Part shown: piece after piece, positions 21,106-41,163 of the stretch
How positions within the stretch are numbered: the stretch's first letter is position 1
How the letters are laid out: each line of letters begins with the position of its first letter
Origin: Geosiphon pyriformis uo1
Lineage: Eukaryota; Fungi; Glomeromycota
Direction of reading: 5' to 3'
Assembly (NCBI GenBank): GCA_016748015.1
Contig: JAAOMT010000484.1
Coordinates: 309,410 to 373,409, forward strand
DNA length: 64,000 bases
The notes under the pieces: model-generated
What the model saw: the letters and a program-made list of their open reading frames with translations, nothing else
The model's database searches: none
Told to the model about the DNA's origin: nothing
Translations under genes and position numbers: made by a program

Positions 21106-22116
21106 TTGATCATGCTTCATATGTTGAATAGTTGGATCCCTATTGAAAATATATCTAACCGTTCTTGGATCTTAGGCCAGTCTATTAAACACATAAGACA
21201 GTTATATTCATATTATACTTCCTAAGCACTCCTTTTGCAACAGGTCAACAGGTAGAATTTTCGATTCTTGAATCGAAAAATATACATTAGAAACTGGTGC
21301 ACCAATCAAAAACCTTTTCTTTTTCTGAAATGATTGAACTACCTGCATCTACCTTTCTTAAAAGAGTTAAACCACATACAAACATTTCAATTTTATGAGA
21401 TAATTTTAGATGAATTGAAAGAAATATTTAAAGTTTTTTAATTAAAGAACTTCCTAAATTTTGGTATAACGCTCATTTGATAATAAGAAATCTTTTTCGA
21501 AAATACCTTTTATGCGTAATTCTCTAAGAATACAAAAATTATACAAAGCTTTTTTTAATGCATAGAAACTCGATTAATTTCTCCTAATGTTTCAAAGTCA
21601 AACTTTTTACCTTTGTAAAAATTGTGAACAATAACCCAACAATCCCAATTTCGTGTTCACGAAAACTCAATAATGATAAATCTGAAATGAGCTACCTTTT
21701 TATGTCACAGCCTCAAATACCAGAATATTACCAAATTTGTTTCTTGCATTAATGCAATTTAAACGTTTCGCTCCTTACAGATTATTCTGTGTTCGCAGTG
21801 AACATTACCCCTTGCAGATTCTTTATGAATTCCAATTTCAAAAAAAAACTGAAACTTCTTGATTGACAAAATGAGTTTAATGTGGAGTTGATCATTAACA
21901 AATTTGTTCGAACGCCCATTCCTAACGTAATGATTAACATTTCGTTTAAATTAATCAAAACTTGTATGTTAATGAAAATTTTTCTTTCATATTTGCAAAT
22001 CACTAAAAATTTGAAAGTTTTTCATGCATGCAGAATTTTCTCTCTTCATGAAATTAAGACAAAGTTTATTAAAAAAAGAAATCAATCTATTTTCGTCTGA
22101 AAGTTAAAAAACAATG

Positions 22117-22124
22117 TATAAAAG
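22117..22124 (+). promoter_or_regulatory. Putative TATA box of the 1067-aa gene
   Basis: TATAAAAG 247 nt upstream of ATG 22364. Confidence 0.5.
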
Positions 22125-22363
22125 GACATCGAGTGAAAGTTGTTTCTTCATTCCTTTCGTATAATACGAATTATTCATTAGATCTCTTTAACACACCAAG
22201 AGAATCATCAAAAGAAAAATCGAAGATTTGGTCTTTAAAAACTCATTTTACTATCTAGTTTTTTATTTTTATTTTTTATAACAAAACTCGTTTTACATCT
22301 TTCATCCAAAAAATTGCATCCTATCACACATCACATTAATCAATATTCGGAATCAAACCACAA

Positions 22364-25300
22364 ATGAATAAACAAAATTTTTTCAGCCGTTCTTCAAGGC
22401 TTTTTCTCCTCGCTCTTCTCATCAACAAAGCCCTCTTGATCACCTCCATCCCAGTTTCAAGTTTTAACGGGAATGGTAACGGAAACGGAAACATTGGATC
22501 AGGAAATGGAAACGATAACGGTAACTTTAACTTGGGGGATTTTAATGGTAATAAAAATGGAAACAACAACTTTGGTGACTTGAACGGTAATTCCAATGGC
22601 AATGCAAATATCGGTAGCTTGAATGGAAACGAAAATGGTAACGCAAACTTCGGGAGTTTGAATGGTAATTCAAATGGAAACGCAAACCTCGGTAGCTTGA
22701 ATGGAAACGACAATGGAAATTATAACTGGGGATCAAGTAACGGTAATGCCAGTGGAAACTTTAACGGGGCATCCTCATATGAGTGGGGTACGGACAGCGG
22801 TAAAAGTAACGGTAAAAATAATAAAGAGGAGGGATCTAAATCCACTAATGGACTTTTGAACGGCCATTTCGACAGCGGTGTTGGTAATGGTAATTCAAAT
22901 GGTAATTCAAATGTGGGGTCAGACAATGGTAATTTAAATGGTAATTTCAACATCGGTAACTTTAATGGAAACTCGAACGGTGACAATAATATTGGGTCCT
23001 CAAATGGAAACCTCAATGGCAACGGAAATATTGGAGATTTTAACGGAAATTACAATGGTTTGGGAAATATTGGCTCATATAATGGTATTGGGAATGGAAA
23101 TTTGAATTCCGGCTGGACATCAGTTTCTGGTCAAGATGGCTCCAAGAGTTCTGGTAGCTCTAGTTCCTCATCCCAGAGTTCTGGCGTCGTCAAAACCACT
23201 TCTACCGTCCCTGATATTCCAAAAGTAGATCCCTCCAAATCAGAGACCAAAAGTACCACTGATGGGTCCTTCCAAATCCCTTCATTTGGTATCGGATCCA
23301 TTGGTAATGGAAACGGCAATGGCAATGGAAATATTGGCTCCAACAATGGAAATCTCAATGGTAATGCTAACGATGGTTCACTAAATGGAAACGGCAATGG
23401 TAACTTCAACATTGGCTCCAACAATGGAAATATCAATGGTAACCAAAACGATGGTACCGCCAATGGAAACGGCAATGGTAACCTCAACATTGGCTCCGAC
23501 AATGGAAATCTCAATGGTAATGCTAACGATGGTTCACTAAATGGAAACGGCAATGGTAACCTCAACATTGGCGGCGGAAACGGAAATTTGAACGGAAATT
23601 TGAATGGAATATTCACTACTGGCAGTACTACCTTTACCACTGTGTCAGGCAATTCTCCAATTGAAACAACCACCAAAAAGACCACCACCAAAGCATCCGC
23701 TCCAACTGGAACAGTCATTGTGATCGGCACAAAAACAAGCTCTTCCAGCTCTAGCACAGCAGCACCAAAAACCACCGTAATTTCTTCATCTTCCGGTAAT
23801 GGTAATGGCAATGGCAACGGAAACATTGGCTCAGGAAACGGCAATGACAATGGAAATGGCAACATCGGATCAGGAAACGGTAATGCCAATGGAAATGATA
23901 ACATCGGGTCATTAAACGGTAATGCCAATGGAAATGGCAACATCGGATCAGGAAACGGTAATGCCAATGGAAATGACAACATTGGGTCACTAAACGGTAA
24001 TGGGAATGGAAATGACAACATCGGGTCATTAAACGGTAATGGCAATGGAAATGATAATATCGGGTCACTAAACGGTAATGTCAATGGAAATGGCAACATC
24101 GGATCAGGAAACGGTAATGCCAATGGAAATGACAATATCGGGTCAGCAAACGGTAATGCCAATGGAAATGACAATATCGGGTCACTAAACGGTAATGCTA
24201 ATGGAAATGGTAACATCGGATCAGGAAACGGTAATGCCAATGGAAATGATAATATCGGGTCACTAAACGGTAATGCTAATGGAAATGGTAACATCGGATC
24301 AGGAAACGGTAACGCCAATGGAAATGATAATATCGGGTCAGCAAACGGTAATGTCAATGGAAATGGCAACATCGGATCAGGAAACGGTAATGCTAATGGA
24401 AATGGCAACATTGGATCCGGAAATGGTAATGCCAATGGAAATGGAAATAGTGGATCTAGTATCGTTATAGTTACCCCAACCACTACTAAAACACCGATTG
24501 TCTCATCAGTAACATCAACTTCCACAAAGACAATACCGGCCACCACCAAAACCACATCTACCACATTTACCTCAACTTTAACTCCTATTTCCGTTCCTAC
24601 AACTAAAACAGCAACTGTAATCTCAAGTGTAACTCCTACAACTAAAACAGCAACTGTAATCTCAAGTGTAACTCCTACAACTAAAACAGCAACTGTAATC
24701 TCAAGTGTAACTCCTACAACGAAAACAGCAACTGTGATCTCAAATGTGACTCCTGCAACTCAAACGACAACTGTGGTTATAAATGGGACTACTTCAACTA
24801 GAACGATAACTGTGACTTCAAATGGAGCTCCTTCGACTCAAACGACAACTGTGGTTATAAATGGGACTACTTCAACTAGAACGATAACTGTGACTTCAAA
24901 TGGTACTCCTTCAACTCAAACGACAACTGTGATTTCAAATGGAACTCCTTCAACTAAAACGACAACTGTGGTTATAAATGGGACTACTTCAACCAGAACG
25001 ATAACTGTGACTTCAAATGGTGCTCCCTCAACCAAAACGATCACTGTGGTCTCAAATGGGACTACTTCAACTAAAACGACAACTGTAGTCCCAAATGCGA
25101 ATCCTTCAACTACAACTGTAGTCTCAAATGCGAATCCTTCAACTACAACTGTAGTCTCAAATGCGAATCCTTCAACTACAATTGTCACCCCAATTATCAT
25201 TTCCACAACTAAAACAGCTTCTGCAGTTCCCACCGTAATCATTCCACCAAATGGGTCTAGCCCATCATCTATTACCAGCTTACCACCAGCTTCATCACCA

Positions 25301-25567
25301 GCTTCATCACCACATCCATCATCAGGGTCGACCTGGGATTCCAATTACGCAAGAAATCATGGCTACACTGGTACTTGGGGTCAATGGCAAATTGATAGTT
25401 TCTGTAATTCATACGCTTCCTTCTTGACCCCAGGTCACCTTTTGTACAACGTTCCAAATGGTTATGGCGCGTATAACCCTAATGCGAACCATGCCAATGG
25501 TTATAATGGTTATAATGGTTATAATGGTCATGTGTCATCATCTAATGATAAAAGCAAGAATCACTAA
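22364..25567 (+). CDS. Secreted 1067-aa protein: four Asn/Gly 13-mer repeat modules, Ser/Thr linkers, Thr-rich 13-mer repeats and an aromatic C-terminal tail
   Basis: Uninterrupted 3.2-kb ORF with a signal-peptide-like N-terminus (RLFLLALLINKALLITSIPV). Repeat consensus N-hydrophobic-G-x-x-N-G-N-x-N-G-N-x with synonymous codon variation between repeats. No C-terminal hydrophobic GPI signal. Confidence 0.92.
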   Translation: MNKQNFFSRSSRLFLLALLINKALLITSIPVSSFNGNGNGNGNIGSGNGNDNGNFNLGDFNGNKNGNNNFGDLNGNSNGNANIGSLNGNENGNANFGSLNGNSNGNANLGSLNGNDNGNYNWGSSNGNASGNFNGASSYEWGTDSGKSNGKNNKEEGSKSTNGLLNGHFDSGVGNGNSNGNSNVGSDNGNLNGNFNIGNFNGNSNGDNNIGSSNGNLNGNGNIGDFNGNYNGLGNIGSYNGIGNGNLNSGWTSVSGQDGSKSSGSSSSSSQSSGVVKTTSTVPDIPKVDPSKSETKSTTDGSFQIPSFGIGSIGNGNGNGNGNIGSNNGNLNGNANDGSLNGNGNGNFNIGSNNGNINGNQNDGTANGNGNGNLNIGSDNGNLNGNANDGSLNGNGNGNLNIGGGNGNLNGNLNGIFTTGSTTFTTVSGNSPIETTTKKTTTKASAPTGTVIVIGTKTSSSSSSTAAPKTTVISSSSGNGNGNGNGNIGSGNGNDNGNGNIGSGNGNANGNDNIGSLNGNANGNGNIGSGNGNANGNDNIGSLNGNGNGNDNIGSLNGNGNGNDNIGSLNGNVNGNGNIGSGNGNANGNDNIGSANGNANGNDNIGSLNGNANGNGNIGSGNGNANGNDNIGSLNGNANGNGNIGSGNGNANGNDNIGSANGNVNGNGNIGSGNGNANGNGNIGSGNGNANGNGNSGSSIVIVTPTTTKTPIVSSVTSTSTKTIPATTKTTSTTFTSTLTPISVPTTKTATVISSVTPTTKTATVISSVTPTTKTATVISSVTPTTKTATVISNVTPATQTTTVVINGTTSTRTITVTSNGAPSTQTTTVVINGTTSTRTITVTSNGTPSTQTTTVISNGTPSTKTTTVVINGTTSTRTITVTSNGAPSTKTITVVSNGTTSTKTTTVVPNANPSTTTVVSNANPSTTTVVSNANPSTTIVTPIIISTTKTASAVPTVIIPPNGSSPSSITSLPPASSPASSPHPSSGSTWDSNYARNHGYTGTWGQWQIDSFCNSYASFLTPGHLLYNVPNGYGAYNPNANHANGYNGYNGYNGHVSSSNDKSKNH
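23822..24450 (+). repeat. 39-bp coding tandem repeat, 16 copies of NIGSxNGNxNGNx
   Basis: Counted from the translation. Confidence 0.9.
24595..25180 (+). repeat. Coding Thr-rich tandem repeats (39-bp PTTKTATVISSVT x4; 39/78-bp TQTTTVVINGTTS-TRTITVTSNGAPS; 33-bp TTTVVSNANPS x3)
   Basis: Direct DNA and protein repeats. Confidence 0.9.
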
Positions 25568-27949
25568 TAGAAATCAGAATATTAGACACAGCTGGCTTTA
25601 AGGATATACCTTTGCCAATGGACATTGGGTATTAGATCTAATAGAACCGAGGTTAATAGAAGATAGTGTAATAATTGACATTTAGACATTTATATTCATC
25701 TTTAGCCAGTGATTTCAGCATTTTTTCACCTAGACTAAATCATCTTTGTACTATTCGTTGATTCGAGTAGCTGGTAAAATAATCATTAGTTTTTAGAAAT
25801 GCAAGTTTCAACATCAAATAACAAAAATAAAGTTTTAGGCTAACATTAAGCCAATTTGAAAAATTATAAAAGAGTTTTTTCGCTTGAATGGAATCTAAAT
25901 TTACCATAACGTTATGTGTGATAAATATTTTTATTGATATATCTGACTGATTTGCTCTGACTTCAACAAAAAGGATATAGAATCGAAAAACTATCAAGTT
26001 ACAAGCCAATAATAATGTTAATTACGGCCTTAGGCGAGATATTTGTCAAAGAAATTTAAAGAATCAAAAATTATTTGAAACACACATCACATATATCTTC
26101 AAATGAAAAGATCCCGATTATGAATTAAAGCCCGCAGCAAGAGTCTTTTTAAAAGGAGATTGTCAAATACTTTAAATAATATTAATTTAGTTTTAATGAT
26201 TAAAAATTTTGTTTTTGAATAATCAAATTTTAATTATAATTATATTTTCATTATTAAGCTTTAAATATTTATATAAATAGTTATGTTTACAATTTTAGCT
26301 GGGTGGGGTTGATTCAATTCACTTAATTAGGCAGAATTTTCATAAACTTTAACCCAGGTCTTGGCTAACTTCAAAAGGAAATATCAAAGAATTAGTATTT
26401 CTAGACTTGATAACGATCCTTCCCAGTAATTTTTTTCTTTTAAAAAATAGTTAGCATGATATGGGAATATAATCTTAACTATATTTGATTTTAAATTTTC
26501 CGATGATAGAATAAGAAAAAAAAATTTTGGGTAAAATAAAAAACCAACCCAATCAAAAAAAAATTACTCTGGAAAGAAAATTTAATTTTTTTTAAAAAAA
26601 TGATGTAGCTTTTCTCAGCCGTTTATTTTAATCATTACCTCTTGATTATTTCAATATTTTTATCTTTTTTTATTTTACTTATAAAGAGTTCATCAATGAA
26701 TTAAACGGTATACCCAATTAATTCAAAGAGACTTTATTTCGGTCATAACATATTCCATTTCCATCAAGATGGAATAATTATGCTAGAATGTCAAGTTTTA
26801 GATTATCATTATAACGCATACTTTAAGCTTACACCTAATGGTCAATTGTCTATAAACGAAGAAAAAAATTATGGAGATAAGAGTAAAATATCTTTTTAAC
26901 TCTAAATAACTCTTTATTTATAAAAATTTTTTAATTTTAAAAACAAAAAATAATATTGATAATGCATGACGCTTTATCTAGTGGTATAGAATTAGGTACA
27001 GGTGACAAGTCAGTAATAAGTAATATCCAGGATGACAAATTTCTTATCTCAAAAAAAAATTATTATTATTATTATGTAATAATTCAGGTACTTTTTAACT
27101 AAATGAAATTTTTAATGCTTGATTAGGATTAAATATCTCATATAATTATTTTCAAATAGGTTACTTATCATCGAAATACCTTCGCATACAATATTATTCC
27201 TCTAATAAGTCTTACCAATTTAAATATTCTATCTTTTCCACATTATATTACTTTAATATTTTTTACTTATTTCAATTATTATTAATATTTGAATATATAT
27301 ATATATATATATTTTAAAATATGAATTTTAAATAAAATAAAATTTTATTATTATTTATTCAAAATTTAATTAATTCAAAATTAATTATTAATATTTTTTA
27401 TTGTTATAATTTTTTTTTATAAAAATTGTAGTTTTTAAAATTTCTTAAAAATTATAAATACTTTTCAAAATTAAATTTATTTTGTAATGAAAAATTTTTG
27501 ATTTAATTATAAATTTTTTTTTTAAAATTATTATCATCAAAAATGTTTTTTTGTTTTTCTTTTAAATATTAAAAATTATTTAATTTTTAATTGTAATTGA
27601 AATTTTTTTAAGGTTTTAATTTTTTTTAGCAATTTATTTTTTTTAGATTATTATTAAAGTTTTTTTAAATTATTTGTATTTGCAATTACTTTAAAATTTA
27701 ATATTTTTTCTCTTTAGTTTTTTAATTATCAATACCAAATTATATGAATTTTATGTAAATTTAAAACAATAACAACAACAACATATTTTATTAAAATCAA
27801 ACTTGTTAATTTTTAAGAATGTTTTTAAAATATTTGGTAAAATCTAGTTGTTAAGTTAAAGTTTATTGGCTTTTAATAATATGTTTTTGTTTAGTTTAAA
27901 AATTTTGAATCTGTTAATTTTTTTTTTATTAATTAATATTATTCAACAA

Positions 27950-28170
27950 AAATTAATAAATAATTATAATAATAATATAATAATAAATTATAATAATATA
28001 ATATAAACAATAAAATAATAAATTATAATAATATAATATAAACAATAAAATAATAAATTATAAACGATAAAATAATAAATTATAATAATATAATATAAAT
28101 GATAAAATAATAAATTATAATAATATAGTATAAACAATAAATTAATAAAATATAATAATATAATATACAA
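27950..28170. repeat. AT-rich minisatellite (taaacaataaaataataaattataataatata-like units)
   Basis: Several imperfect tandem units. Confidence 0.7.
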
Positions 28171-30498
28171 TTACTTAAAAATTTGTTTTTTTAAAACCCA
28201 AAAAATGGTTTTCAATAAACAAATAATTATAATATAATTAAATTAATAATAATTTTTTTTGTATTATTTTTAAAATATGTATATATATAAAATAGTTTTT
28301 AACTTGAAAAAAATTTTTTTTATTAAATTTATCTTTTTTCAGATTACTATTTTTTTAATAAAATTTCATTAAAAAAATTAATTCTACTTTAAAATAAAAA
28401 TTATTATTTATTACAATTCTTATTATTAATAAAAATAATTAAAATTCACTTATCTTTCGTCAATGTTTATAATTTGACTTTAAATTCAAAATTTTAATAA
28501 TTTAAAAATTACTAATTGTTTTATTTTATTGAAGTTTACTAATTTTATTATCAAAAAAAAAAGAATATCACTTACATAATAAAGGTGAAAAATGTATTCA
28601 AACATCTAAGAATTTGAAATATTTAGAAAAAGATATCCAGGATCTGTTTCAAAAGAAAACACAAACAGAAGTGTGAAAGTTTGAGAATTCTTCTTAAAGA
28701 CAAAATATTAAAAGAACTAATATACAAAAATGTTATTTTAGTGTTTTGAAAATGACAAGTTTGTGATATCTCTAATACGAGATTGTTTTATTGTCATTTA
28801 TTTAATCTAGTGTCCTGATTTAGAAGTTTGAAAATATTTATTACTTTTGATTTTGTGAAGATTAGCTTACCATGAATAATATCTTCAATAAAAATTTATG
28901 TAGTACATCTGTTTCCAAATCGGAAATAAACATAATTAGCTGGAGATATTCGCCGCCATTGTACCTTATTGACTACCTTTGAGTTTATAATAATTGTAAC
29001 GCCTGCACACGTTCCTATGCTAGTACGATATTAATCAATGTCCAGTATAGTGGAACAATCGTACACACCTTGAAATGCATTCCCAAATGCGATTACAGTA
29101 TTTGAGCTCCTTTGGCGAGTCGCATGCAGAACTTATGCAATGAGTTTTGTCTTTGAATGTAAATTTTCCACAGCAGTCATCCCTGCTGTTGTTGACTAAA
29201 AAACCAAGCCTTCTTAAAGATTAAAGATGACGTAGGGGGATAGACATGAATGGTGCTTCTTCGATGTGAGCATATTGCGAGTCCACGGTTTTACAACTGG
29301 ATCACAAAACTTATTTTTTTTTCTTTCCTCTTCTATAACTTGCATTTTGTACTAATCTAGGATTATACGAAATGCAAAAAATCTTTGATTGTGCATTAAA
29401 TACAAATGCCCTATTCCACAAAGCGTCTGATCACTATACTACTTTTTTTGATCTTTTATAAAGAACAGCCAGACCATCATTATCTATAGCGATAAAGATG
29501 TGACGAAGAGAAGAATCATAAAGACTCGGTTGCGTTTGAATTGTAAATGTTTCTCAAAGGTGATAGCGATATTATAAAGCCAAGGAAGATACTCTTGGAA
29601 CTTTTTTTTTTTTTCAATATATTCACATTTATTGGAAGACCATAATATAAGAAGATATCAAAGATAAAGGTTTGAAATTTTTTTTTTTTTTGATTGTTCA
29701 ACCGAGTCCAGAACCTTTCACCTTTTTTTTTGAATGAAGTATGTTGCTAACCTATTACAAAAAAATAAAGATAATACTAATAATAATCTTATAAGCCATT
29801 TGAAAGAAATTCTTTATTGACTAAATAAAGATTATAATATTATGTTAATATGATCAACAAACTATTTACCTTTGAAAACCAACCAACCAACCAACCAACC
29901 AACCTGCTGTGAGAATGCTTTTTTGAAATTCATTTACAATAAATAATTTTGTGTATATTTGGGTCATATGGTCTTTTTTTGGCCAAAATATTTCTTCAGA
30001 ACGTTGTGGAATATATAGTCGTTGGAAGACATTAGTTAAATTCAGTATAGTTTCAAAGAAAGCTGAGATGATGATATGTTATTCTTTTTAAAAACAGAGA
30101 CTATCTACATAGCTTGATAGAAGAAAGTTTGGAATGAGAGGTTACGTCAAAGATGATCAAATAGGAAAAGGTTGAGCAGTCTCATAGGATATTTTGTGAC
30201 TTTTTATGATAATCATACAGGATCTTGGGAAAATTAGTCTTTTTACAGTAAAAATGTGTTGATTTATTTAAAACTTTTTTTTTTCTTTAGCTCTATTAAA
30301 TCAAGTCTTTGGGAAGTTTTCTGGCTCATATTTTCATTTAATTACCGTAGTGAGACGTACTGAAAATGATATATTACGAGGAAAAAGCTTTTGATCATTC
30401 TTTTTCTTATATATCTTAATATGAGCTTAAAAAATGTTTTTATATATGAAAAGAAAAGAAAAAATAATAATAAAAATAATAATAATAATAAAAATAAA

Positions 30499-30534
<36 letters not shown>

Positions 30535-31408
30535 TTATAAATACGGTCAAATTCTTATCTCAAGCCAATATTTTGACTATTAATTAACCACAAAACTAAT
30601 GAAATATGTGTAGCTTGTGTTTCGAAAAAATTGAACATTAATTGTGAGTTAATTAAATTTTTCTTTATAAAGGACAAAAGTTGTGTACCAAAGATTTAAT
30701 GAACCAACCATATTTTTTATAATTTTTTATAATTTTAAAAAATTTACTTTTTAATTTTTGATTACATAGTTAATTAGAAATAATTTTTTATTATTATCAT
30801 TATCTTCTAGAAAGTCAGTTTTATTAATTAAACATTCTTAATTAATTGTTAACCTCGAAATTTAGAAAACCTTTTAAGAAGTCAATTTATTTAATATGAA
30901 AAAATATCAAGAGTTCTATAATTGCGAATCTTTATCAAAAAAAAAAAAACTTTTTCATCAAAAAAATTTACTACCACGAAATGACCATGAAATTTGTTCT
31001 AAATAGAATAGAATTGGGAAAAAGAGATTTCTTGTTCAGCATGACATGTTGATTATTTTTAGATTTTTTTGACCGTTGTTACTTGGCATGTCAAAACATT
31101 ACAAGCTTTCCTAGCCACAAGTTAAACAAATATTTGCCACTCTGTTTTTCCTTTCTACGACAAAATGTACAGAAAATCAAAAAAGAATATTAAAATATGA
31201 AACTTATTGGCTCTTTGGAATATCACATTTTTCTGATCGTCATTTCATTATCGAATAAAGTAATTGGTACGCCCATGTTTCATTCTAAATAGAATAAACA
31301 AAACTTTATTTCATATCAGTTTACCCCAAAGACTAATCTGCGAGACCACATTAAATGCATAAATTCGAATGACTAATAAAAGAAGGTGAAGATCAAAAAG
31401 CAATCAAG

Positions 31409-31415
31409 TATAAAT
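31409..31415 (+). promoter_or_regulatory. Putative TATA box of the 107-aa gene
   Basis: TATAAAT 222 nt upstream of ATG 31631. Confidence 0.4.
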
Positions 31416-31486
31416 TGCGGACTGGAATGAGTAGTGCGTGAAAAATATTGGTACTTTTTACCTTGATTTTTTTTTTGAAAATTTCC

Positions 31487-31562
31487 ACTTTCCTTCCCTT
31501 CCTTTACTTTACTTTACTTTACTTTACTTTACTTTACTTTACTTTCCTTTCCTTTCCTTTCC
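31487..31562 (+). repeat. (CTTTA)n/(CTTTC)n pentanucleotide repeat in the presumed 5' UTR
   Basis: Direct reading. Confidence 0.88.
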
Positions 31563-31630
31563 ACGAACCTACCACCAACTAAAAATCAAACTAATCTTTG
31601 AATACATTGATTGAAACATAATCTCAAAAC

Positions 31631-31954
31631 ATGCAACAAAACACAAAAATGACTCACTGTCTCTTCACCGCTATTCTAATCTTCACAATACTTTTAATAA
31701 CATCTACCCTCTTTGTAAACTCATCCCCAATCACAATTACACCCGCACAACAAGCCGATGAAAACCGAAAAACAAATCCCACTATAGCCGCTCTAACGCT
31801 TCGTGACTTTATTCAGAAACGGTCGGAGGAAACTTTGATTTATAGTTTTGATAAACGGGATAATGGCATGACATTTGAATTTAAGAGGTCGGGAAATCCT
31901 ATTGATTGGGAAACAGAGGAAAAATATTGTGAAGAGGAAAGGTTGTGGTGTTAA
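31631..31954 (+). CDS. Small secreted peptide precursor with three Kex2-type KR sites (KEP-like)
   Basis: Signal peptide (CLFTAILIFTILLITSTLFVNS|SP), pro-region, then KR-SEETLIYSFD-KR-DNGMTFEF-KR-SGNPIDWETEEKYCEEERLWC. Start could be Met1 or Met7. Confidence 0.8.
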   Translation: MQQNTKMTHCLFTAILIFTILLITSTLFVNSSPITITPAQQADENRKTNPTIAALTLRDFIQKRSEETLIYSFDKRDNGMTFEFKRSGNPIDWETEEKYCEEERLWC

Positions 31955-34900
31955 CTCTCGAGAAATTGACTTTATCAACTAATTAGAATATAATTAATTA
32001 AATCTACTTAATCCTTGTAATTTTATAATTTCACCAGAGAGAAAGACCCGGTTGATTTTTAATTAATAGTTTTCTGTTTTGAATACCTATTGCATTTTTT
32101 AGAATCACTTTTCATCTTTATTGTAAATTTAGCTAATGCTCTTTAATAATATTTAGAAATTATCACAATTAATATCATAGAATTCTAGTAGAACCACTCA
32201 TTAGAACATTCAAAGCTTTACCAGTTCATCCATTCTATCTTTATTAATATCACCTCATAGTAAACAAAAAAGATTCACCAGAATTTGGAAAAAAAATATA
32301 TATATTTCCAAATGACGTAAATATATTTGAAATTGAGCTTGAATTATTATTTTTTTTTTTGGGGGGGGGGGAGGGCGGGGGGAAAGCTCATCATCTAGAT
32401 CATTGATTATTTTTGTTATCAATCATTCTTGCTCCATAGGGGGGATTATTAATTTCCGTTAAAGCTATTAATAAAACTTTTGAGTTTCAAAGTCCGAAAT
32501 AATTGATCCAATTGATGAAAAAATTAAATGAATTTATAAAGCCTTCAAAATTTAAAATGAAAATTATGATATTATTTTTTTTTTTAATTTGGATTTCAAA
32601 AATAATTATGTATCTTTAAATATTATTTTTGTTTTTTTTTTAAATTAATATTAAATAATAACTAAATAATTTCTTCACTTGAATAAAAAAACATTTCTTA
32701 TTCTTTAAAATTATAATATTTAATAAAAACATAAACTATTTAACTTGAAAATAATCTAAAATTTAATTTGTATTATTTAATATAATTATTTCTAATTATG
32801 TATTTTAATTGTTGTTTAGTTTTGTTAATTTTAAATAAAAACAATATAAAACTGTTTTTTTATAAAGTTTGTATTTCTTGAAATTAAGCTTGATAATTTA
32901 TTTTTTCATTATATATATTTAAATTTTTAAACCTGTTGTAATTTAAAATTAGTCTTTTTTTTACTGTTATTATATTTTGTTATATTTATTTTTGAAATTT
33001 TTATTAACATAAATTATTTTTGAAATTTTTATTATCAATTAAATTAAATTATTTTTTAATATATTTAACTTTATTTATTTATTTATTATTATTAACCTAA
33101 ATTATTTATAATTTTTATATTTTTTTTTTGCGATTGTTTTTATAAATAAAATTAAATAACATTTGATAATTTTAATTGATTAATTAATTATAAAAATTTA
33201 AAAATGAAATTAAATATTATATAATTTATTAAGTTTAAACCAATTTATTTATTTTTTGTTAAAAAAATCTATTAAAAAATAAATAAATAAATAAATATAT
33301 TAATTTTTTAATAATCATCTTTTAATTTTAATTTTATATTAAATAATTATATTATTATTATTTTTTATGTCTGAATTAAAATTATAATTTTACAATCAAT
33401 GTATTTTAAAATAAAATTAGTAAAAATATTTAAAATAAAAATAAAAATAAAAATATTCAAATTTATAAAACTAGAAATCGGTATTATTACTATTATTATT
33501 ATTATTATTATTATTATCGCTATTTAAATTAAATCTTAAAATACTTTAGTATTTATTGCCAATTTTATTTTAATATTAAAAAAAATTATTTTTATTTTTA
33601 TTAAGCTGAGAAAATTTTGTTTTAAATATTAAATATTCTGCTGTTAGAAAAAAAAAAACTCATCAAGTAAAAATAATTTATTTTAAATAATATTAAAGAT
33701 TCTAGAAGAATTTTATTTTTTAAAATCAAAAAAAAAAATTATTTACATTAAGTTAAACAAAAAATTTTTCAATTAAATTAACAGTATTATTTTAAATTTT
33801 AATATAAAATTTGTATACTGTTAACAAATTAAAATTTGAGGATAAAAATTATTTTTAATTTTTAATATTTTAATACTTGAAATAAATACAATTTATTAAA
33901 AAAAAATTCTTTTGTTTAAACCATTTCACAATTAAACACTGTTTAAAAAAAGTAATAACTTTATTAAACAAAAAGCGACAACAAAATTTAAAAAATTTGA
34001 AACTTATTACTATAATAAAAAGCATTTAAGAAATAAATAGCTAAATTTACTAACATTAATTAAAAATTAAAAATTAAATAAATACTTTTGATTACCAAAA
34101 TTATTTTATTAATAATGTTTGCATGTAAAAAAAATTCTTGTTGCTTTTCAGTTTTTTTTTTGTTCATTAAATATAATCTCAAATTGCAAGTTTGTCAATT
34201 GTTAATTTTATAATAGCTTAAAAACCAAATGTTAAAATTTTGATTTTTTCTGTAAAGTTATTAAATAATATAAGAAAAAATTACTAATTAAATCAATAAA
34301 TTTGTTAAAGTTTTTATTATTGTTGTTAATATTATAATTAATAAAGTTTTTATAAAAATAAACAACATAATTATTAATAATTAATCAAACATATTTTTTA
34401 ATATTAATAAATATTAAAAATATAAAAAAGGTGATTTAAAAAATTACTGATAAAAATTAATTCTCGCAGAATTTGTTTTGTTGCATACCAATTTTTTTTA
34501 TAAACAATCAAATATAAAAAATTTTTATGTGCGATATTAAAAGTATAAACAATACGACAAACAATTTGATATAATAGAAAAAACAAAAACAATTAACAAG
34601 ATTACAATTATTACAAAGGTTTACAAAACATTATTAACAAAAATCTTGAATAGTATTGGTAATTAGTGACTTAAGCAATTAATATTAAATTTAATTAAAT
34701 GATAGTTATTGGTTTTTGTTTTTGTAATGATAAAAAAAAGAAGTTGTGTTTTAAAAATTTTTTTAAGTATTCAAAATTAATTAAAGCTTGATAAATTAAT
34801 AATTGAACTTGTTAAGTAATGAGCTGAATTGTTTAAAAAATTAATTAAACAATCCATAAAAACTGATTAAACAAAATATTTTTGATTATAATAATGCTAT

Positions 34901-35165
34901 AAATTATACAAAAGTTTAATGATTAAAATATTAGAATCAACCAAGATAAAAGCTTCAGAATAAATATAATTTTGAATAATAAATTTTTAATACTAGCAAG
35001 TTAATTTAACTTTCTATAGATTATATATACAGTTTATTAATAAAGAATTGAAATAAAAACTATCATTACTTCGTTAAAGAATAAATTTAAATAAGTTGAG
35101 ACAAAATTATTTAATTTTAGTGTATTTATTAATAAGTACATGTTTAATAAATTCCAACATCATTT

Positions 35166-37273
35166 TTAGGGGTAAATATTATAATTTTGTAAATCTGTTT
35201 CACCTGTTTCATCTATCGGAGGTAATAAATGAGGTGACGTTGAATAATCTGAATTATGGTATGGGAGTTCCACAATATTTGGTACTTGGTCTGTATTTGA
35301 TTTCTCTTCTTTAGCGGCAAGATTCCGCAATTTTTTTAAATGAGAATAATCAACAATGTATTCGCGTAGGAACATTTCCAACACATTAAATCTAGCTTCT
35401 AGATGTCTAAATGCTGGATCTTGTGATTGTGGAGTATTATGAGAGGATGCAAATTTTGCTTGACTCACCAGTGGAATTATAGGGAATGTTTTCCGAAGGT
35501 GGGCCGATGATTTTCGAGCGAATACGCAGCAAAATATTTGTGCACATCCAAAAGGACGTAATGCGTCAGTACCTTTGATTTGTGTAAAATTAAGGTACGA
35601 ATAATAATATAAAACTAGTTAGTCGAGAAAATAACTTTTTTTTATTTTTAAGTTTTGTAAATAACCAACCGAAAATCGCTGTGTAAGCCGCAGCTGCTAT
35701 GCTCCATGCTCCCCCAAACAAGGCAAAAGCACTCAGAGCCTAGATTTTTAGAAAAAACACATTTTTTAAAATGATCCCTGGTGAGCTAATATTTTATTGA
35801 CTAGAAACTTAAAACGGTTATATGAAAGAAAGATATTAAAAAGAATGCTCACAGTTTTTGATCTGTCCAATTAAATTAAAACAAAGTTTTCACGTAAAAC
35901 AGGATTAGAACCATTCAAAATATCTTTAAAGTTACCCAAATTTCTGAAAATATGCTTGCTTGCTTGATAACTTACCTCTGCTCTGTTTCAACTTTGACTA
36001 AAAAGCTCTGCGGAAGAAGATTTACCGTTCCATAGGCCGATGTATCATTTATTGATAAGGGCGAGGTGACTAATTCATTGAACATGAGTCATTAATATTG
36101 CCGATCAATTCACATTGAATAGGGGCATTTTAGTTGAAATCATGAATTCTTTAAAACTTACTAAGTACAGTGTTAACCCAAGGCTCGGTTTTGCGTTTTG
36201 GTGGAATACCCAAAGAATTTAGAGCACTAGGTTGGATAATTTCTTTTAATGACCTTGTGAATTCAACCATTGTATTCTTAATATGGCAACGAAGTAACGC
36301 AAAAGTCGATTAAGATTTTTTTTTACGTATATATGCATATATCCGAGCTTTTGATTTTTAATACTTACTGAACGATACTAAAAAAATTGTGATCACCATT
36401 AAAGTTGATTAATACATTTACTGCGTATATTCAAAAAAAAACCCCCCACATCAAAATGAGTTAAAGTCAAAAATACCTACAGCTAATGGAAATGTATTCA
36501 TCGCAAAAAGAGATAACAAATAAACTGAATCGTTTTTATATGAAGATATCGAATTTTTCAATTCTTCAAATTATTTTTACAGAAATCAAAATTAGATTCG
36601 AATTCGAGATAACAATCTGGGAAGTCTTTGACAGTCAAAGAACATACCTCCATCATATGCTTGAAATAACAAAACTCCAGGGCTATTTGCGTCAAATTTA
36701 GAAGAAGTAACAGTCACCCCAAATTGGATGCCATAAATTTGGTCTTTTCGAGTTAGTGGGTATGCTTTTAAACTTCCTTCGGGATTAACAAACATTCCGC
36801 TATAACGGTCTGAATTATCGTAACTAATGTAATCTTGACAAGAATTTCCAGGACTGCCATCTTTTTCAATAAAAAATCAAAAAAAGGAAAATTAATATTT
36901 GAAACTCGTTAAACATTCAAATAATAAAAAGTGAAGAGTATGGTGCTGCTTACTTAAAAATACAAATTCACAAGTAAGTTTGAAGGGGTATTCTAAACGA
37001 AAGTACATATCTGCCAAATTATGCTTTTTCATTAGCGACTTTTTAATAATATAAACTCCAGATTCTAAAGTAAAAATTACCTGGAATCGGCAAGTAATCA
37101 ACCAGCCTCGTTGATTGTTTCAGAACTGGGTTATCTCCGATAATATCAATCAACAAAATGGAAACGAAACCCAGCATCAGGCCTAAAAAGAGTACCATTA
37201 TAAATGCACGAAAAACGACCAGTTGTATGGGTTCACTAGAACGATGGTTTCGAAAAATTCGATTAAAATGCAT
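35166..37273 (-). CDS. Multi-exon (about 9-10) two-transmembrane protein of about 415 aa; uncharacterised family, possible PAC/DEG-ENaC-like fold
   Basis: Hand-spliced with GT-AG introns: 37273-37081, 37010-36954, ~36860-36648, ~36563-36481, ~36277-36163, ~36070-35976, micro-exon 35862-35853, 35739-35670, 35572-35166. TM1 LVVFRAFIMVLFLGLMLGFVSILLI; TM2 ALSAFALFGGAWSIAAAAYTAIFG; C-terminal LEARFNVLEMFLREYIVD. Middle junctions are less certain. Confidence 0.82.
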
Positions 37274-37316
37274 TTTTAAAATTGAGTTGCCTTAGATGAT
37301 ATGAGAGCTAATTTAT

Positions 37317-38707
37317 TGCTAAAAAATTTGAATAATTGAGAAGGAAAAAGAGAAATTGAAAAACTCTTTAGCAGGTTCTGAAGGGATTAATTTGGGCCTA
37401 TGAACCAACACAAATCCTTCTTAAGCCATCCGCACAGGCGGTCCTTATATTGCAGTCGTTGGTTAAATCGTCAACTTTTGAGTTAAAGAAAATGATTGGA
37501 GTTGAAGTATTAATTAAAGTGGAGAAAACGGCAACTTGATGATTATCAAATACAGATCTATCCAAATTTAATTCTACAAAAGTATTTTCATTGATATTAC
37601 CAGTTAAAGCTTTATCAGGTATCAATATCAATTAGGTTATTTTTTTAGGTATAATATATCAGAACTTTAAAGACAGACTCTTTAATTTTAATCACGGCTG
37701 ACAAAAAGGGAAACTGGACCTAGAATTGACATTAGTCTTATTATTAGTTTATCATAGAATTTAAGTCTATTCAAACTTTTCTAAATTCATGCTAAAAAAT
37801 TTGAATAATTGAGAAGGAAAAAGAGAAATTGAAAAACTCTTTAGCAGGTTCTGAAGGGATTAATTTGGGCAAACCCTTCTTAAGCCATCCGCACAGGCGG
37901 TCCTTATATTGCAGTCGTTGGTTAAATCGTCAACTTTTGAGTTACAGTAAGATCAAAGAAAATGATCGGAGTTGATCTTTCCTTCGATTCAAATTAAAGT
38001 GGAGAAAACATTTTCTGACGGCAACTTGATGATTATCAAATACAGATCTATCCAAATTTGATTCTACAAAAAAGTTATTGGGGTCGGATACTTTTGCGGC
38101 GCTGTAATAAAATCTGCAAGATGATTATCATTATGTAACAAATTATTGTAATAATAATAGGGAATTGCTAAATCGACCCACCCGCAACACGTGATATTAA
38201 TATATATAGAATTTTAATATTTATTTATTAGTAATTCTAATAAATTAAAAATAAAAAATAATTTTTTCTTATATAAAATTGAATATAGATTATATATTTA
38301 ATTTTTTATTATGCCTTAAGTAATTTATAGTGTTTTATAATTAAAAACACTTTTTTGTGGACAACCATAATATTCGTTAATATGTTCCTATATATAGTTG
38401 AATACGAAACTATGACGTAAAATGATATCACGTGTTGCGGGTGGGTCGATTTAGCAATTCCCTAATAATAAAGGGCAAATTTTTTTCTTCCTAATGTATT
38501 TTCATTGATATTACCCGTTAAAGCTTTATCAGGTATCAATATCAATTAGGTTATTTTTTTAGGTATAATATATCAGAACTTTAAAGACAGACTTTTTAAT
38601 TTTAATCACGGCTGATAAAAAGGGAAACTGAACCTAGAATTGATATTCGTCTTATTATTAGTTTATCATAGGATTTAAAGTCTATTCAAACTTTTCTAAA
38701 TTCATGC
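37317..38707. repeat. Tandem direct duplication (copy 1 ~37317-37790; copy 2 ~37790-38707 with an insertion)
   Basis: Both copies start gctaaaaaatttgaataattgagaaggaaaaagag and end tctattcaaacttttctaaattcatgc. Confidence 0.93.
38160..38462. mobile_element. MITE, 303 bp, with perfect 38-bp TIRs
   Basis: GGGAATTGCTAAATCGACCCACCCGCAACACGTGATAT (38160-38197) and its exact reverse complement (38425-38462). AT-rich non-coding interior; TAATAATA on both sides. Confidence 0.93.
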
Positions 38708-39528
38708 AAAGTGTCCCAAAATTTGAAAAGAATCGAAATTTTGTTCAGTCAAACAATCACAAAGTATCATAATTGTATGAGAATCATTTTCAGATAAAGC
38801 TAGTGAAAATTTAATATTTCGAAACAATCAGTCTCATTTATGTTTAGATGAAATTCTGGATTAAATAAAGAGTTAAAAGTTTTTAGTGAAGATTACAAAA
38901 TAAGATTGTTACATTATATTATATAATCAAATCTTATTTTTTTGCTAATATTAGAAATTTTATCAGATTAATGAGATTTATTTCAATTGGGATGGGTAAC
39001 GTCAATGTGAGCATATGCAATGTAAATCTCTTATAATTTTTAGAAGGCATAAACTCAAAATAATCTTTGAATTTATTTTACAAATGGTCAAATACAATCA
39101 GGTAAGCACCAATTTTTTTCATAGAAAAATGGGTTTGGGGTTTAAACTCTCCGTAAATATCCAAGTTTCACAATTTCTTTGCCTAATTTTATTTCTTTAT
39201 AACCATTTTCCCAACAAAGAATAATACTGGATTCAAGCTTTAAATAAACTAGGGAATTATCTTTTTATGACGATTTTACTATCAAAAACAGAGTAAGCCT
39301 CAATTTGATGACTAGGTAAGGTTTAGCCTTGAAAAACTATTATTAGCTAACGAATCATTATTTTCTTTTTTTGGATTTTAGCAGATCTGCTCTTTCAAAT
39401 AAATGATCGATCCAAAAATACCTTGAGCTAATTCTGATTATCAAGGAAACTTTTTTGGGCTATTATTTGATTGTTAATAACTATTAATATCATCCTTCAA
39501 AGATATTAAAGATGAAGGGGAAAAATGG

Positions 39529-39537
39529 TATAAAAAG
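39529..39537 (+). promoter_or_regulatory. Putative TATA box of the 478-aa gene
   Basis: TATAAAAAG 198 nt upstream of ATG 39727. Confidence 0.5.
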
Positions 39538-39726
39538 AGAGCGAGATTTACCAGTTTAAAAAAGTTCTTCATCCAATAACTCTAAAAATCAAAAAGAATT
39601 CCCTAGTTAACCATCCCAATTTTCTTCCATCTTGATAAAAAATATCTCTAGTGATTTAAAACACAACTTGCCAATAACTTTGAAAATTTCAATTACCGAG
39701 TCTATAAAATTCTTAAATTCATCGAA

Positions 39727-41163
39727 ATGCAAAAAATCTCAATCACAAGCATCTCCTTAGCCATTCTTCTTTTATCTACTCTTGTCACATCCCATCCCTT
39801 CACCCTCGAAAAGAGAAGTAACGGAAATGGTAATGGCAACGGAAATGGAAATATTGGAAATAACAATGGAAACAATAACGGAAACAATAATGTCGGCTCA
39901 AATAACGGAAATAATAATGGAAATAATAACGTAGGATCCAATAATGGAAATAATAACGGCAACAATAATGCTGGCTCAAATAACGGGAATAATAATGGCA
40001 ACAATAATATTGGTTTTGGCAATGGAAACAACAATGGCAATGAAAATGGTTTCTCATGGCTCTACCCTAATTTTCCTTATAGAGGTTATTATGGTGCCTC
40101 TAATAATGGAAATAACAATGGAAACAACAATTTCGGGTCTTATAATGGAAACAACAACGGGAATGCAAATGGATATTACCCATGGGTTCTAACTAAACGT
40201 GATGGTAATGGAAACGGAAATGGCAATGGAAATATTGGAAATAACAATGGAAATAATAACGGAAACAATAATGTCGGCTCAAATAACGGAAATAACAATG
40301 GAAATAATAACGTAGGATCCAATAATGGAAATAATAACGGCAACAATAATGCTGGCTCAAATAACGGGAATAATAATGGCAACAATAATATTGGTTTTGG
40401 CAATGGAAACAACAATGGCAATGGAAATGGTTTCTCATGGCTCTACCCTAATTTTCCTTATAGAGGCTATTATGGTGCCTCTAATAATGGAAATAACAAT
40501 GGAAACAAAAATTTCGGGTCTTTTAATGGAAACAACAACGGGAATGCAAATGGATACAACCGATGGATTAAACGTAATGGCATTGGAAAAGGAAACGGAA
40601 ATGACAATGGCAATGGAAATGTTGGAAATAACAATGGAAATGATAACGGAAACAATAATGCCGGCTTAAATAACGGAAATAACAACGGAAATAACAACCT
40701 AGGATCCAATAATGGCAATAATAATGGAAATAATAACACTGGTGCTAATAATGGTAATGATAACGGAAATAAAAATATTGGGAATGGAAACGGAAATGTA
40801 AATGGAAACAATAATGTTGGTTCAAATAACGGAAACAGCAATGGCAATTATAATATTGGGGATAAAAAGGCTGCTTGGAATGATAATAATGTCTGGCATA
40901 GTTTTGATGGTAACAAAAATGGTGATTATTTATTTGGCAATTATTTTGGGAACTGGGCTTCAAGCTCATTCAACGGAAACCTTAATGGAAACAATAACAT
41001 TGGCTTTGGAAATGGTAACAATAATGGCAACGCCAACAATGGTTTCTTTAATGGAAATGGCAATGGAAACAATAACATTGGCTCATTAAACGGCAATAAC
41101 AATGGAAATAATAATTTTAGAGATTTTTTCGTCCCTGATGTTCCATCACCCTGGTCATATTAA
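39727..41163 (+). CDS. Secreted 478-aa Asn/Gly 13-mer repeat polyprotein with three Kex2-type KR sites
   Basis: Signal peptide (ISLAILLLSTLVTS|HP) and LEKR, LTKR, WIKR separating three repeat modules. Modules 1 and 2 are a near-identical 381-bp duplication. Confidence 0.93.
   Translation: MQKISITSISLAILLLSTLVTSHPFTLEKRSNGNGNGNGNGNIGNNNGNNNGNNNVGSNNGNNNGNNNVGSNNGNNNGNNNAGSNNGNNNGNNNIGFGNGNNNGNENGFSWLYPNFPYRGYYGASNNGNNNGNNNFGSYNGNNNGNANGYYPWVLTKRDGNGNGNGNGNIGNNNGNNNGNNNVGSNNGNNNGNNNVGSNNGNNNGNNNAGSNNGNNNGNNNIGFGNGNNNGNGNGFSWLYPNFPYRGYYGASNNGNNNGNKNFGSFNGNNNGNANGYNRWIKRNGIGKGNGNDNGNGNVGNNNGNDNGNNNAGLNNGNNNGNNNLGSNNGNNNGNNNTGANNGNDNGNKNIGNGNGNVNGNNNVGSNNGNSNGNYNIGDKKAAWNDNNVWHSFDGNKNGDYLFGNYFGNWASSSFNGNLNGNNNIGFGNGNNNGNANNGFFNGNGNGNNNIGSLNGNNNGNNNFRDFFVPDVPSPWSY

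Follow-up and report, generated by a model that had tools for sequence, protein, structure and literature searches.

Three intronless genes at the end of a contig

The window analysed here is a stretch of 64,000 nucleotides of Geosiphon pyriformis DNA, which forms the end of a 373,409-base contig (JAAOMT010000484.1). The genome searched with its genes was the Geosiphon pyriformis assembly of 128 Mb and 792 contigs. Translation of the window gave three intronless open reading frames (ORFs) on the + strand, none of which contains an internal stop codon: gene A (22364-25567, 1067 residues), gene B (31631-31954, 107 residues) and gene C (39727-41163, 478 residues). A and C are built from the same gapless 13-residue unit, N-x-G-x-x-N-G-N-x-N-G-N-x, and KR sites are present in B and C and absent from A. 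All three N-termini resemble signal peptides, with 9-10 hydrophobic residues in the best span of 12 by a crude count and a plausible cleavage region by eye.

An earlier reading of this locus, made from the letters alone (the sequence-only reading), had combined the three genes into a candidate secreted system. Its description of the genes agrees with ours: we find the same three single-ORF genes on the + strand, their secreted look, the register common to A and C (31 and 21 strict matches, respectively), and the contrast in layout between A, with four modules on Ser/Thr linkers, a Thr stalk and no KR site, and C, with three modules split by KR. The genes are also co-oriented within 19 kb, A and C lying 14 kb apart on one strand. 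Yet co-orientation of three genes has a chance expectation of 1 in 4, and a minus-strand gene that looks multi-exonic intervenes between B and C (~35.1-37.6 kb).

Architecture of genes A and C

Nearly all strict matches in A follow each other at exactly 13 residues and fall into four arrays. Array 1 (22490-22762, residues 43-133) has 7 units that share 64% nucleotide identity and in which the N/G skeleton is 98% occupied. Array 2 (22871-23104, residues 170-247) has ~6 units, array 3 (23330-23602, residues 323-413) has 7 units with a 26-residue super-repeat, and array 4 (23822-24445, residues 487-694) is a recent expansion of 16 units. The arrays are joined by Ser/Thr linkers and followed by a Thr/Val-rich stalk and an aromatic-rich C-terminus. 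Overall, A consists of 22% Asn, 18% Gly and 26% Ser plus Thr, and neither KR nor RR occurs in it. As it ends without a hydrophobic tail of the glycosylphosphatidylinositol (GPI) type, a GPI anchor is unlikely.

The stalk of A (24464-25243) is rich in Thr, Ser and Val and mucin-like. Its DNA carries a tandem 39-nt (13-residue) period between 24595 and 25178, with ~15 copies and 80% matches. The stalk repeat and the Asn/Gly repeat have equal unit lengths but unrelated sequences. The alternating T-V-T of the stalk is reminiscent of the beta-aggregation-prone stalks of yeast adhesins. A search with the stalk and C-terminus found one weak match in the Geosiphon genome itself (contig C632, E 4.8e-8, 28% identity) and zero matches in a set of 5.8 billion proteins, where a word-indexed search scored the candidates that share words with the query. 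Lacking a convincing relative, this part of A does not define a recurrent ‘scaffold’ class, and A itself appears, from its sequence, to be a one-off mucin-like mosaic.

Gene C is richer in Asn (42%, with 22% Gly). KR occurs at residues 29, 157 and 282 and marks off a short pro-peptide from three modules, which are 128, 125 and 195 residues long. The predicted signal peptide and the pro-peptide, which ends in EKR, occupy 39727-39816 (residues 1-30), a layout that is common among the paralogues. Module 1 (39817-40200, residues 31-158, ending in KR) contains a 13-mer array, an aromatic insert and two further units. Module 2 (40201-40575, residues 159-283, also ending in KR) is its near copy, the two forming a 381-nt repeat with 90% matches. 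Module 3 (40576-41163, residues 284-478, with the stop codon) consists of a diverged array and an aromatic-rich C-terminus. The Asn/Gly modules of C (~40060-40200 and 41090-41160) and of the paralogous loci L026, L007 and L035 have aromatic-rich ends just before KR, with runs of Trp, Tyr, Phe and His, for example GW repeats or ..SYWYKR. These ends could be solenoid caps or cross-linking sites.

Kex2-processed repeat proteins (KEPs) are a defined class, recognised by a pipeline that asks for a signal peptide in a protein free of transmembrane segments, at least 4 fragments and at least 3 fragments sharing a pattern over at least 15% of the protein (Le Marquer 2019, PMC6339444). Cut in silico at KR/RR, the pro-peptide and three modules of C give at least four fragments, whereas A, having neither dipeptide, gives none. 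As to the repeated pattern, C offers two near copies and one diverged relative. Of a kexin, contig C608 encodes the proprotein-convertase P-domain, the part that was checked, with a score of 53 bits, which exceeds the cut-off. In its layout, C fits the KEP class, with predicted cleavage. The proposal of the sequence-only reading that C is a dibasic-cleaved polyprotein thus stands as a prediction, with KR-delimited modules, a kexin P-domain in the genome and published relatives that have been read in the same way.

A large and clustered gene family

A six-frame search of the genome with C returned 102 matches; manual grouping of these gave about 55 open frames, spread over 30 contigs. Frame counts from such a search are lower bounds. 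In at least 20 cases, two frames are separated by no more than 19 kb, where random placement would give 0.44 such pairs; contig C580, for example, has 10 frames in 125 kb and contig C773 has 6 in 43 kb. As the family is so strongly clustered, two members 14 kb apart are the usual picture. We read 26 loci at the sequence level, with ~30 distinct ORFs that have signal-peptide-like starts; the frames on contigs C715, C773, C630, C379 and others are described from the table of matches alone.

Three architectures recur among these loci. The first consists of KR-flanked modules (L002, L007, L015, L026, L027, L029, L035 and L039), in which near-identical modules of 67-93 residues number as many as seven, and in most of these paralogues a pro-peptide ending in KR directly follows the signal peptide, as in C. 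L027, L035 and L039 have 4-7 near-identical KR-flanked modules, so that the repeated pattern asked for in a KEP is plain. The second architecture is a plain array without KR (L008, L016, L028, L030 and L031), and the third is the mosaic, represented by A, L019 (with a Ser/Pro linker), L034 (with a Lys-rich linker) and L032. The last of these, at 2214-5345 of its locus on the minus strand (G000:C645, ~770-773 kb), is a secreted-looking protein of 1043 residues, in which Cys-rich segments bracket a short Asn/Gly array; acidic repeats rich in Thr, Gly, Asp, Lys and Pro follow over ~800 residues, and the end is again Cys-rich. Such an architecture indicates that the 13-mer cassette has been shuffled into unrelated repeat proteins.

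The paralogues nearest to C are found on contigs C584, C568 and C580, with 64-70% identity over short N-terminal stretches, whereas A ranks only sixth among the matches to C (58%) and its predicted signal peptide is of a different type. We also looked for a repetition of the A-C arrangement elsewhere. The other long frames of the family, of 1043 (C645), 960 (C715), 616 (C379) and 587 residues (C630), have no KR-type partner within 19 kb, and no A-like neighbour was found beside the other KR-type members.

The family is not well served by the public gene models. At L015 (G000:C580:218000-227999) and L017 (G000:C580:248000-257999), runs of the letter N, which are assembly gaps or masked letters, lie inside Asn/Gly genes, and the arrays there are probably collapsed or unresolved in the assembly. 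The public model G9A89_006378 (P0001) combines an F-box-like N-terminal part with a KR-flanked Asn/Gly C-terminal part that matches the KR-type genes of contig C580 (L007/L017), and is probably a mis-join. The exact A and C proteins are missing from the public protein collection, whereas the exact B protein is present. Taken together, the public annotation of the Asn/Gly family looks unreliable.

Conservation, fold and distribution of the 13-residue unit

A tandem repeat in coding DNA may simply be a product of slippage. In the old arrays of the family (L028, L016, array 1 of A and module 3 of C), the 39-nt units share 61-65% nucleotide identity, the variable positions have 17-25% amino-acid identity, and the third positions of the eight skeleton codons are 45-51% identical, which is near random. 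The N/G skeleton itself, eight of the 13 positions, is nevertheless 90-98% occupied. In L028 the spacing is exactly 13 over 20 aligned units, inside a gapless run of 25. Recent expansions were found in array 4 of A and in L030 only. The retention of the skeleton at near-random synonymous sites shows that it is under purifying selection and is not a mere trace of slippage.

In both AlphaFold2 runs on array 4 of A, the model has a strand every 13 residues and one coil per repeat, with a mean local confidence (pLDDT) of 56 when no alignment was supplied, and of 65, at a predicted TM-score (pTM) of 0.57, with an alignment of 25 rows. VIA-align superimposed this model at Z ~10 on many unrelated beta-solenoids and beta-rolls (UspA1, TibA, Ag43, ryegrass ice-binding protein) and at Z 7.6 on curli CsgA; these are generic solenoid matches. 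No family for the repeat came out of the Pfam and NCBIfam scans, which covered A, B, C and the matches from outside; a sequence search of the Protein Data Bank (PDB) gave a chance-level match only, and a feature search of the ESM Atlas gave no usable match. The avoidance of N-glycosylation sequons is not a test of structure in this case, because the fixed skeleton dictates where sequons can fall.

A profile of the arrays, searched against 1.84 billion representative proteins, found 135 at E <= 0.001. Among Glomeromycotina these include Geosiphon KAG9291474, KAG9292667 and KAG9289063 and Ambispora leptoticha CAG8643519 (E 4e-14 to 5e-5), and within fungi the family is restricted mainly to this group. 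An ascomycete protein, Microdochium bolleyi KXJ90418 (P0022), which UniRef names a hydrophobin, matches at E 4e-12 with eight in-register units between a signal peptide and a Cys-rich domain. It links the Glomeromycotina repeat with the N-terminal Gly/Asn extensions that have been published for class II hydrophobins. The bacterial matches come from Mesorhizobium (P0004, P0026), a metagenome-assembled genome of Flavobacteriales (P0009) and metagenomes (P0002, P0003, P0005, P0007), with 6-10 units each. In the four metagenomic proteins, the units are accompanied by a globular C-terminal part and by a tail resembling VPLPA-CTERM, which scores slightly under the curated NCBIfam cut-off. Wherever the context of the unit is readable, it is extracellular.

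Promoters and expression

Each of the three genes has one TATAWAW box: TATAAAA at 22117-22123 for A (247 nt upstream of the start codon), TATAAAT at 31409-31415 for B (222 nt) and TATAAAA at 39529-39535 for C (198 nt), all on the + strand. As 16% of the 50-nt spans in the AT-rich DNA of the window also hold such a motif, the boxes are weak evidence for the trio taken alone. However, a TATAWAW was found at -80 to -250 in all 21 paralogues checked, and the 500 nt upstream hold just four extra copies elsewhere. Hence the box is a real promoter feature of the whole family. The positions given in the sequence-only reading are correct, but the boxes do not mark out the trio.

The sole public run that holds part of 22117-31990 is a small one (X1, 46 million letters, 2019) of uncertain kind. 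Over 21700-26400 its contigs cover 23270-25791 alone, at word depths of 33-394 and colinear with the genome; they end ~224 nt past the stop codon of A, and both flanks are uncovered. Such a depth in so small a run, with the intergenic DNA left uncovered, would fit cDNA rather than genomic DNA. C is represented in this run as well: two contigs have loose ends with C-specific sequence, which match at 40173 and 40239, on either side of the junction of modules 1 and 2.

Gene B and the surroundings

Predicted cleavage of B at its KR sites (63, 75 and 85) would release peptides of 12, 10 and 21 residues, which do not repeat one another. B therefore gives four fragments in silico at KR/RR but not the repeated pattern of a KEP. 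The database searches returned no relative of B other than B itself, and its own genome holds no paralogue. A (CTTTA)n microsatellite of ~12 copies (31502-31560) lies 71-129 nt upstream of the start codon, between the TATA box and the ATG. B is an unrelated, single-copy orphan encoding a small protein that is predicted to be secreted. It stands outside the Asn/Gly family, and its place between A and C would be a coincidence. The suggestion that it is a co-regulated component of a system with A and C finds no support in a single-copy orphan without repeated peptides.

The three genes are located in a repeat-rich, gene-poor compartment. The G+C content falls to only 7-14% at 27000-28500 and 32500-34500, where AT-rich tandem repeats flank the genes, and transposon relics lie upstream (RNase H, 1203-1907 on the minus strand; DDE_1, 9209-9763 on the + strand). 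The ORF pieces of the minus-strand gene between B and C had no significant Pfam match. Long Pro/Leu/Phe-rich ORFs of up to 477 residues face A (22336-24564) and C (39702-40847) on the minus strand; these are by-products of the repeats and not genes.

Interpretation

The most likely explanation, to which we assign a probability of about three in four, is that A and C are separate members of the known family of Gly/Asn-rich (GN-rich) secreted proteins that includes GpRIC1-3 of Geosiphon, with C of the KEP type, and that they do not form a dedicated system. C would enter the endoplasmic reticulum by its signal peptide and be cut by a late-Golgi kexin after R30, R158 and R283. The three soluble modules so released, ~125-195 residues long, would each be a short stack of 13-residue coils whose ends are rich in aromatic residues. 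A would remain uncut. Its Ser/Thr linkers and stalk would be heavily O-glycosylated, and its four arrays would be displayed at the wall or within the extracellular matrix. The N/G skeleton would most likely form a tight polar beta-solenoid or beta-roll, that is, a hydrophilic and possibly self-associating module of the surface or matrix. For such independent members, a structural role in the wall or matrix is a tentative proposal, to which we give somewhat less than even odds.

Several points weigh against this explanation or limit it. Secretion, Kex2 cleavage, glycosylation, the fold and the role in the wall or matrix are predicted features. The confidence of the AlphaFold2 model is low, with 65 for the best of five models and 36-51 for the other four, and a Foldseek search of the PDB with it gave no match; a disordered state is therefore still compatible with the data, and the published authors do class the GN-rich proteins as intrinsically disordered. 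In sequence of such low complexity, homology of the bacterial and ascomycete repeats is indistinguishable from convergence. The sequence-level reading covers the part of the family at 26 loci. It is uncertain what kind of run X1 is; it leaves the 5' third of A uncovered (although holes prove nothing), and its contigs carry no expression levels. A specific partnership of A and C is unsupported, yet it is not disproved.

The strongest competitor, although we consider it unlikely, is that these are disordered, hydrophilic, low-complexity proteins, which form a hydrogel, protect against desiccation or frost or act as a nitrogen-rich sink, and in which the 13-residue period is a trace of DNA slippage without a defined fold. 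It would be in agreement with the published classification and the amyloid-prone composition (PMC8786786), with an AlphaFold2 confidence of just 56-65, with the failure to find a Pfam or NCBIfam family or a PDB sequence match, and with the recent DNA expansions in array 4 of A and the L030 array. The old arrays are difficult to reconcile with it. At 61-65% identity and near-random synonymous sites, they still have N or G at 8 of 13 positions and a spacing of 13 over at least 20 units. Furthermore, bacteria and an ascomycete have this skeleton too, and slippage alone predicts neither this recurrence nor the retention of the skeleton.

Slightly less probable still, in our opinion, is a role of the KR-released modules as symbiosis signals or effectors directed at the Nostoc partner or other microbes, rather than as structural elements. 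The name and origin of GpRIC, as far as they are conveyed by the citation in PMC8786786, point this way, as do the great expansion of the family in Geosiphon and the pheromones, toxins and plant-induced peptides that KEPs yield elsewhere in fungi (PMC6339444). However, the modules are 65-195 residues long, compared to the 9-24 usual for KEP peptides of Dikarya, and relatives exist in Paraglomus and Ambispora, which live in symbiosis with plants and lack cyanobacterial partners. The same 13-mer is also built into anchored surface proteins and hydrophobins.

A bolder version of the structural idea, which we think improbable, is that the 13-residue Asn/Gly unit is a new, unusually tight polar beta-solenoid with 13 residues per turn and without a hydrophobic core, held by an Asn ladder and Gly turns and common to fungi and bacteria, and that in Geosiphon the Kex2-released mini-solenoids stack end to end into an extracellular polymer templated or anchored by wall-bound mosaics like A.

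The model put forward in the sequence-only reading we regard as less probable again. It makes A the glycosylated scaffold or nucleator and the C modules the polymerizing subunits of one fibre, in the manner of curli CsgB/CsgA or long and short chaplins, with B co-regulated. A and C do share one 13-residue register, lie 14 kb apart on the same strand with a TATA box each, and are both represented in the small cDNA-like run, and the predicted solenoid geometry permits end-to-end stacking. Against this, the register is common to about 55 frames and clustering is the rule in the family, as is the TATA box; the nearest relatives of C are paralogues on other contigs, with A further off; no KR-type neighbour accompanies the other long or mosaic members; the stalk of A, without a convincing relative, leaves no conserved class of scaffolds; and B is an orphan that is not linked to the family. 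A complex prediction for array 4 of A with module 1 of C returned a score of 0.00, ‘no answer’, which counts neither way. Hence, a dedicated polymer of scaffold and subunits is not supported by the family as a whole, in which no scaffold class is linked to the KR-type genes.

That A and C are decaying copies, or frames left open by chance in microsatellite-like DNA, is hardly credible: repeats do drive long ORFs on the reverse strand of both genes, and both proteins are missing from the public set, but chance is very unlikely to leave a frame open for 3.2 kb at ~40% G+C, the N-termini are signal-peptide-like, the TATA boxes lie at family-typical distances, the N/G skeleton is under purifying selection, the cDNA-like contigs stop just past the stop codon of A, and relatives have been cloned as cDNA.

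In summary, we favour independent membership of A and C in the GN-rich family. What this analysis adds is modest: a selected 13-residue skeleton, its recurrence across kingdoms, the true size of the family and its poor annotation. As a ‘three-gene system’, the locus reduces to ordinary clustering of a gene family plus an unrelated orphan.

Significance

Geosiphon is, to our knowledge, the only fungus with intracellular cyanobacteria, and a key outgroup when the origin of arbuscular mycorrhiza is considered. About 55 genes for predicted secreted proteins, largely missed or mis-modelled in the public annotation, could be a major component of its cell surface or symbiotic interface that has been overlooked. 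If the skeleton truly folds, these proteins would shift from ‘disordered low-complexity’ sequence to a defined module, one found in bacterial surface proteins and hydrophobins too, and their role would become testable.

Comparison with known systems

One likeness is to curli (CsgA/CsgB) and to beta-rolls such as the heads of YadA/UspA1-type adhesins and the Lolium perenne ice-binding protein. These are extracellular and built from imperfect Asn/Gly-rich repeats (with Gln in curli), with one coil per repeat and Asn ladders expected, and the low-confidence AlphaFold2 model aligns with curli and beta-roll folds at Z 7.6-10.2. The period of 13 found here, however, differs from the 19-23 of curli and the 14-15 of beta-rolls, and there is neither sequence homology nor a dedicated nucleator gene. 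In a two-component amyloid, a nucleator or scaffold gene is recurrently linked to a subunit gene, and no such linkage was found in the family.

A second likeness is to the class II hydrophobins with Gly/Asn-repeat N-terminal extensions and to the spacers of the multipartite hydrophobins of Claviceps (Kubicek 2008, PMC2253510). Like A and C, whose secretion is predicted, they are fungal surface proteins with Gly-Asn repeats, and the 13-mer register is known among them from the Microdochium case. The translations of A and C are almost free of Cys, contain no eight-cysteine hydrophobin pattern and have no hydrophobin Pfam domain.

Two groups of processed fungal proteins resemble C in particular. 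The repellents of Ustilago maydis Rep1 derive from a secreted precursor that Kex2 cuts into many related peptides, and these remain on the hyphal wall and form amyloid-like fibrils (Wosten 1996 and Teertstra 2009, as cited in PMC6339444). Rep1 is thus a fungal precedent for processed subunits that build a surface polymer, without a separate scaffold. It has no evident sequence relation to the modules of C, and its repellents are ~37 residues long and amphipathic, whereas the modules are polar Asn/Gly arrays. C shares with KEPs in general a predicted signal peptide and dibasic KR sites that delimit compact repeated units. It departs from them in having two near-identical modules and one diverged module against a minimum of three, and in the length of these modules (125-195 residues), which is far beyond that of most KEP peptides.

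The closest match, however, is to the GN-rich intrinsically disordered proteins (IDPs) described from Paraglomus brasilianum, Ambispora leptoticha and Geosiphon, which are secreted and carry KR motifs that were read as Kex2 sites (Schultz, Wu & Baumann 2022, PMC8786786). GpRIC1-3 of Geosiphon pyriformis (GenBank MH580277-9) come from a thesis that is cited there (Hoffrichter 2018). The sequence-only reading knew of no described fungal system of this layout. With GN-rich secreted KR proteins published for all three genera, and KEPs including Rep1 known, that statement has to be withdrawn, and the clear match to a described family, itself published without an assigned function, goes against the idea of a new system. 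The published account recognised only imperfect repeats of 4-5 residues and treated the proteins as disordered and amyloid-prone in composition. It speaks of three Geosiphon genes and a ‘small family’, whereas we find about 55 open frames, and a mosaic such as A, with four arrays, a Thr stalk and no KR, is absent from its description. In other respects the agreement is good. The published relatives, which were cloned as cDNA, have ORFs of 456-470 residues compared to 478 in C, and A and C have in common with them an ER signal peptide (predicted here) and a high content of Gly and Asn, to which C adds the KR motifs. By inspection, Pabra_AGL1 and Pabra_AGL2 of Paraglomus (supplement of PMC8786786) contain the identical 13-mer, with EKR behind the signal peptide and HKR between modules, and the same 26-residue super-repeat as array 4 of A. 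Both A and C have the composition of the GN-rich IDPs (Gly and Asn each above ~15%, low Pro), and they are tied to them in sequence by the profile matches to the named Geosiphon and Ambispora proteins and by the 13-mer of Pabra_AGL1/2.

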